Program-made: the position numbers and the translations under genes
Part shown: positions 128 through 220 of the stretch, piece by piece
Position numbering within the stretch: position 1 is the first letter of the stretch
How the letters are laid out: each line of letters begins with the position of its first letter
The notes under the pieces: generated by a model
Seen by the model: only the letters and a program-made list of their open reading frames with translations
The model's database searches: none
Told to the model about the DNA's origin: nothing
Assembly: GCA_964057225.1 (NCBI GenBank)
Contig: OZ059895.1
Location: forward strand, 3,224,001 to 3,288,000
DNA length: 64,000 bases
Reading direction: 5' to 3'
Origin: Auanema rhodensis
Lineage: Eukaryota; Animalia; Nematoda

Positions 128-220
128 ATGGATCTTTCCTAGTTCTGTTGCTTGAATGGATGTTTTCCTACGTAGGCTAGTAAAACATGCCCTTCAAAGC
201 ATCAGAACATGTGATCACAT
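128..220. ncRNA. Candidate pri-miRNA-like or hairpin RNA unit (speculative; strand unknown; one per monomer)
   Basis: About 25-bp upper stem with a 15-nt apical region (167-181), an internal loop, and a lower stem ATG-GATC (128-134) / GATC-A-CAT (213-220). Structure only: no expression data and no recognised family. Confidence 0.3.
142..208. other. 67-bp imperfect inverted repeat (fold-back hairpin), present in every monomer; first copy shown
   Basis: Left arm GTTCTGTTGCTTGAATGGATGTTTTCCTAC (142-171) reverse-complements to GTAGGAAAACATCCATTCAAGCAACAGAAC. The right arm reads GTAGG[CTAGT]AAAACAT[G]CCCTTCAA[A]GCATCAGAAC (172-208). That is 28/30 matches, 2 mismatches, and bulges of 5, 1 and 1 nt. 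Confidence 0.95.

Follow-up and report, generated by a model that had tools for sequence, protein, structure and literature searches.

A satellite-like tandem array in Auanema rhodensis whose hairpin-bearing unit may be an amplified orphan Sm-type small-RNA gene

The window of Auanema rhodensis DNA analysed here (the whole stretch of 64,000 nt, positions 1–64000) consists throughout of one tandem array, which continues past both window ends. The unit of this array carries a long imperfect stem whose paired positions are shielded from spreading variants, next to a spacer that is free to vary and to be deleted. As a tentative best explanation, held at well below even confidence, we propose that the unit is an orphan Sm-type structured small-RNA gene, still active or active until recently, whose amplification produced a satellite-like array. 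The features on which the argument turns are as follows.

1–64000, no strand assigned: tandem array of 237 units, defined by unit anchors and identity.
61–140, + strand: upstream block present in all units, GC 0.38, a putative promoter; 77–95 and 118–136 are without common variants.
128–220, no strand assigned: extended fold with a 7-bp lower stem, marginal in context.
141–255, + strand: predicted Sm-type RNA of ~115 nt (long stem, linker, Sm-like site, 3′ stem-loop) with a sub-threshold U5 match; both its start and its end are predictions.
142–208 (first copy), no strand assigned: 67-nt imperfect hairpin found in every unit, from folding and shuffles; all pairs are Watson–Crick.
187–208, + strand: 3′ arm, the would-be guide strand under a microRNA reading; 174–206 is free of variants in five or more copies.
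224–233, + strand: Sm-site-like motif AAU7G, with variants (T227A and others), not less variable than background.
237–253, + strand: 7-bp stem-loop that immediately follows the Sm-like motif; it is retained, in weaker form where 239 or 253 varies.
259–343 (unit 1), no strand assigned: AT-rich spacer of 85 bp, the most variable segment of the unit, missing at a single junction from every short unit.

An anchor search located 237 units in the window, 236 of them complete, and all 236 contain the hairpin, in agreement with the ~237 fold-back-bearing copies of the preliminary description. The complete units fall into 167 long (294–296 bp) and 69 short (209–210 bp) forms in irregular order; they comprise 93 distinct sequences, and mean identity between units is 97.6%. 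All short units share one common 85-bp deletion (259–343 in unit 1 numbering), and the spacer that it removes has a GC content of 0.22 compared with 0.38 in the upstream block 61–140. Exact block duplications in the array span 2.4–3.7 kb, and four-gamete patterns between nearby sites indicate recombination between sites of the array. The array therefore spreads and homogenises through unequal exchange and block duplication. The exact multi-unit duplications of 3.6–3.7 kb (5600–9294/15389–19083, 29269–32878/35241–38850 and 9859–13424/13261–16826) are recent higher-order blocks from unequal exchange. As a long head-to-tail array evolving in concert, the locus has the properties of a satellite. 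Within the long units, several linked variants at 299–330 set spacer subtypes, among which the remaining unit recombines. ATTCAG occurs in the spacer at 294 and at 314 as a weakly splice-acceptor-like site, in the second case behind CTAAC and a T-rich run; the short units have neither copy.

The array belongs to no tested family. Only short open reading frames (≤60 amino acids) occur in positions 1–1500, on which ground a protein-coding reading of the unit was rejected. No tRNA was found in the window, tRNA-type boxes were likewise rejected in the unit, and no Rfam family reaches its gathering cut-off anywhere in the window. A literature search for a 294-bp nematode satellite and a comparison of the unit with viral contigs gave no match. 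When 20 bases of the 3′ arm were compared with metagenomes, a single match came up (contig L001, 1866–1885); this contig is GC-richer, the flanks of the match are unrelated to the unit, and it was rejected as chance. The metagenome scan, the viral contigs and the literature text thus contain no homologue of the unit from outside the A. rhodensis genome.

The hairpin 142–208 folds at −25.2 kcal/mol on the + strand and −25.3 kcal/mol on the − strand, with z-scores relative to shuffled sequence of −5.7 and −5.5, respectively (about −5.6). As it was chosen as the best fold of the unit, the appropriate control is the best 67-nt window of each of 120 shuffled units, and the hairpin is more stable than this window in 120 of 120 cases (mean −15.3, best −21.9; the shuffles were scanned at step 3 and the real unit at step 1). 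The preliminary description had called for folding of both strands against shuffled controls, and the fold-back passes this comparison. Among the 236 complete units, 217 retain −25.2 kcal/mol and the weakest reaches −20.9 kcal/mol. Drawn with a 15-nt loop, the hairpin has 23 pairs, two mismatches (148/202 and 157/192) and two 1-nt bulges (189 and 196), as originally drawn. The companion count of 28 paired positions out of 30 in a 67-nt inverted repeat is not retained: the hairpin itself is real, but the count needs the 10-bp palindrome 167–176 to be paired down to a zero-length loop, while in the minimum-energy RNA fold 27 pairs enclose a loop of 4 nt. The stem is without any G–U pair, and its folding energy is equal on both strands.

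The proposed lower stem (128–134/213–220, 7 bp) is separated from the upper stem by a 7 × 4 internal loop. It forms when 128–220 is folded alone, but in a three-unit context its pairing probability falls to 0.03–0.14 on the + strand (0.01–0.8 on the − strand), and T215C breaks it in 24 copies. The flanks had been described as being without obvious pairing; this does not hold on the − strand, where the lower stem runs about 7 bp further through G–U pairs.

Several smaller details of the hairpin region may be recorded here. All three stem mismatches (148/202, 157/192 and 167/181) are pyrimidine–pyrimidine on the + strand, though 56% of array variants are transitions. The perfect 10-bp palindrome 167–176 is followed directly by CTAG at 177–180, loosely resembling a Helitron 3′ end with the usual spacing missing, and the region 167–180 overlaps a five-base piece of the nematode telomere repeat (173–177). 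A perfect 12-bp palindrome, disrupted by T215C in 24 copies, lies immediately 3′ of the hairpin at 209–220.

Next, the units of the array were used as their own population sample to map where variants fall. Mean per-site diversity is 0.003 in the paired stem, against 0.035 at unpaired hairpin positions and 0.020–0.026 in the flanks; the remaining sequence, which is mostly the long-unit spacer, has 0.042. Thirty variants are array-wide (present in at least three quarters of the window); 5.5 of them would be expected at the 54 paired sites, and none lies there. Of the 294 circular shifts obtained by sliding the paired mask along the unit, the true placement shows the least diversity (first of 208 in the part common to all units). 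This rank holds with the fold of either strand and stays at 1 when only distinct units are used, while in the two halves of the window it is 1 and 2. A permutation matched for base and run context gives P = 0.001–0.008 for the depletion at paired sites. These figures are to be read with some care, as the test has about 30 informative variants, the copies share ancestry and the number of masks compared was about ten.

Rare variants are not depleted at paired sites (6/52 versus 27/242 elsewhere; rare versus common, P = 0.04–0.05). Mutation input into the stem is therefore not lower than elsewhere; it is the spread of variants that is blocked, and the stem looks constrained. Two variants are common within the hairpin, and both lie at unpaired sites without energy cost: T to C at 157, where 157/192 is still mismatched, and a loop variant at 173. 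No common variant creates a G–U pair in the stem, and none of ten tested changes that would perfect it by mismatch or bulge repair is found in any of the 236 copies. Variants carried by five or more copies are absent from 174–206; at 33 nt this is the longest such interval in the unit, the next reaching 19 nt. The 3′ arm 187–208 is nearly invariant, unpaired bases included, while the 5′ arm varies commonly only at a mismatch; taken by itself, the invariance of the 3′ arm is not significant (rank 20 of 294). The hairpin had been put forward as a possible small-RNA locus, and the pair-specific depletion of common variants supports one part of that claim, namely that it is more than a passenger; small-RNA function itself is one of several readings weighed below.

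The reading that we prefer starts from the layout of the + strand. The motif AAU7G begins 16 nt 3′ of the stem and is followed by the short stem-loop at 237–253, such that a single-stranded Sm site would lie between two stem-loops, as in Sm-class RNAs; with seven U residues, and U as the next base in most copies, the site is non-canonical. When everything outside the hairpin is shuffled, such a motif and stem-loop follow it on either strand in 0.14% of 5000 trials; the test is a post hoc one, and its result calls for a discount of perhaps ten- to twenty-fold. Common variants retain an A-Un-G motif (T227A gives AU5G) and some of the 3′ stem, which is weakened by G253A in 29 copies and by variation at 239, where A239T occurs in nine. 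Diversity of the Sm-like site together with the 3′ stem-loop equals background (rank 133 of 294). In the short units the deletion starts 3–4 nt beyond the 3′ stem-loop, with 91 nt of GC-richer DNA still present upstream; the chance that a random 85-bp deletion spares 76–255 is about 1 in 10 by simple arithmetic. For a Caenorhabditis elegans PSE promoter, 90 bp of upstream sequence suffices (PMC2527325). We found no recognisable promoter for the unit.

Among Rfam models the best score belongs to U5, whose entire length aligns to 140–255 on the + strand, with 18.4 bits against a cut-off of 40 (E = 1.4). U5 snRNA has an invariant loop 1 (GCCUUUUAC). This loop is absent from the unit, and the hairpin loop 167–181 is unrelated to it. 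Similarity to the printed U5 consensus is at chance, with 151 of 600 and 173 of 600 structure-preserving shuffles scoring as well. Membership of U5 was accordingly rejected. SmY RNA has a conserved first stem-loop sequence (PMC11229312), and SmY was likewise set aside, with no SmY model among the Rfam hits up to E = 10. With the Sm-type layout present, and the U5 loop, U5 similarity and an SmY hit all absent, the unit is laid out like an Sm-class RNA that is not U5.

Reporters transcribed by RNA polymerase III in C. elegans mostly terminate at the first TTTT (PMC2527325). One four-T run occurs in each arm of the hairpin (163–166 on the + strand and 182–185 on the − strand), which argues against polymerase III transcription on either strand, and small RNAs of that class (sbRNA/Y or U6-type) were rejected for this reason. 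A hammerhead satellite or retrozyme was also rejected, as the CUGANGA core is absent, and so was an SL1/SL2 exon reading of the unit.

In the mechanism that we envisage, RNA polymerase II would read the + strand from about 141 to about 255. The product would be an RNA of ~115 nt with a U5/SmY-type layout, in which a long stem on the 5′ side and a short stem-loop on the 3′ side flank a single-stranded Sm-like site. Sm proteins might then be loaded onto this RNA to give an orphan snRNP in which the long stem serves as a protein platform. Selection would act on a variant only once a substantial fraction of the copies carries it, in keeping with the observation that rare variants are tolerated and common ones excluded.

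The closest rival, possible though somewhat doubtful, is a non-coding satellite in which the inverted repeat is constrained as DNA, either by a dimeric protein on the two arms or because units that form cruciforms are favoured in amplification or recombination. The lack of G–U pairs and of common variants that would make them, together with equal energies on both strands, is unusual for an RNA stem, and a purely Watson–Crick stem that folds alike on both strands suits a role in DNA. So do the satellite-type dynamics, with exact block duplications of 2.4–3.7 kb and recombination between sites, and a window without an Rfam or tRNA hit. Nematode satellites often carry conserved boxes, the role of which is unknown or recombinational (PMC3694981), and this too is in line with constraint on DNA. 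Against it, the palindrome is improved in 0 of 236 copies, while selection for cruciforms or template switching would predict some improvement; self-correction by template switching was rejected, as no copy repairs a mismatch or bulge. The unit is also not generally enriched in short dyads (P = 0.15–0.2), and a role in DNA leaves the Sm-like layout unexplained.

Rather unlikely in our estimate is an amplified microRNA or hairpin-siRNA cluster, in which a polycistronic transcript is cropped to hairpins of ~65 nt (about 144–208 on the + strand) and diced, most likely releasing the 3′ arm 187–208. A stable hairpin of ~60–70 nt beyond chance, with an MFEI of 0.80–0.90, is what is expected of a microRNA precursor, and the constraint is confined to a stem of pre-miRNA size. 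C. elegans Pasha measures an upper stem of 24–26 bp in a 16 + 25 geometry (PMC9976908). The upper stem here is about 25 bp, within this range, and the arm 128–168 (41 nt) agrees with that geometry; a cut 16 nt from 128 would yield a 65-nt precursor, 144–208. The near-invariant 3′ arm would suit a guide strand, although on its own its invariance is not significant, and AATAAA is absent on the + strand of the units scanned. The lower stem poses a difficulty: it offers 7 bp and a 7 × 4 internal loop in place of about 16 bp and has a low probability on the + strand, even if Pasha-dependent substrates have weakly bound lower stems (PMC9976908). A stem without G–U pairs, folding equally on both strands, shows no strand preference. 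Rfam microRNA models score 13–18 bits against cut-offs of 68–95. Neither the miR-430/427 seed AAGUGC, already noted as missing, nor the miR-35 seed CACCGG occurs in the arms, whose sequences match only two unrelated cancer papers, over 14 letters, in the searchable literature. No Ruby motif was found in the unit. A mirtron was rejected, as the hairpin ends lack canonical splice signals. If the unit is a small-RNA gene, we infer that it is more probably Sm-type than a microRNA.

Equally improbable is a neutral satellite in which the hairpin is a passenger (a fold-back or transposon relic) and its low variation an accident of array history. Nematodes commonly have long tandem tracts (PMC9071541), genealogies become blocky under gene conversion, and the signal is carried by only about 30 common variants after about ten masks had been tried. 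The shift test preserves this blockiness, however, and the paired mask still ranks 1–2 of 294, and a shallow genealogy of the hairpin is contradicted by the deep variants that it carries at 157 and 173. As to a MITE or Helitron relic, a Helitron would end in CTRR a little way beyond a hairpin, and the palindrome 167–176 with its adjoining CTAG resembles this only loosely; no target-site duplication can be read beside the arms.

A role in DNA and a neutral passenger are both close rivals, and taken together these two non-RNA readings carry roughly the same weight as the two that involve an RNA.

Compared with nematode U5 and SmY RNAs and tandem snRNA gene arrays, the unit has the same order of stem-loop, Sm-like site and 3′ stem-loop, is gene-sized with a dispensable spacer and, like U5, would give an RNA of about 115 nt. 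It differs in lacking U5 loop 1 and an SmY hit, in its sub-threshold U5 score (18.4 versus 40), in a 67-nt first stem and a seven-U site, and in a copy number far higher than that of tandem snRNA arrays. The zebrafish miR-430 cluster contains more than 50 genes (PMC10723407); it and the Xenopus miR-427 cluster likewise consist of tandem pre-miRNA-sized hairpins with protected arms. In contrast, the present array has neither the AAGUGC seed nor homology, has a weak lower stem and a single hairpin type in a homogeneous satellite-like array, and encodes only a candidate RNA. A mosquito satellite-repeat locus, MCpiRCL, from which piRNAs arise out of 17–33 repeats (bioRxiv 10.1101/2020.04.25.061598), is an earlier example of a functional small RNA amplified by a satellite; its products are piRNAs, the accessible part of that report describes no hairpin role, and the A. 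rhodensis unit has no Ruby motif. Meloidogyne satellites with conserved boxes (PMC3694981) share head-to-tail monomers, higher-order blocks and uneven variation along the monomer, whereas conservation in the present unit falls on both arms of a 67-bp inverted repeat and leaves a mismatch and the loop free to vary.

It is conceivable, although we would not favour it over its negation, that this satellite is an expressed gene array of at least 237 copies for a lineage-specific structured RNA without an Rfam family: either an orphan Sm-class RNA with a microRNA-sized stem or a microRNA locus that greatly exceeds known animal clusters in size. Expression would make it a new nematode small RNA, concealed at extreme gene dosage within masked repeat DNA, and within-array variation could expose such genes without any homologue. 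Without expression, the array would still exemplify clearly that a satellite can be under pair-specific constraint, and the role of conserved satellite segments would thereby become testable.
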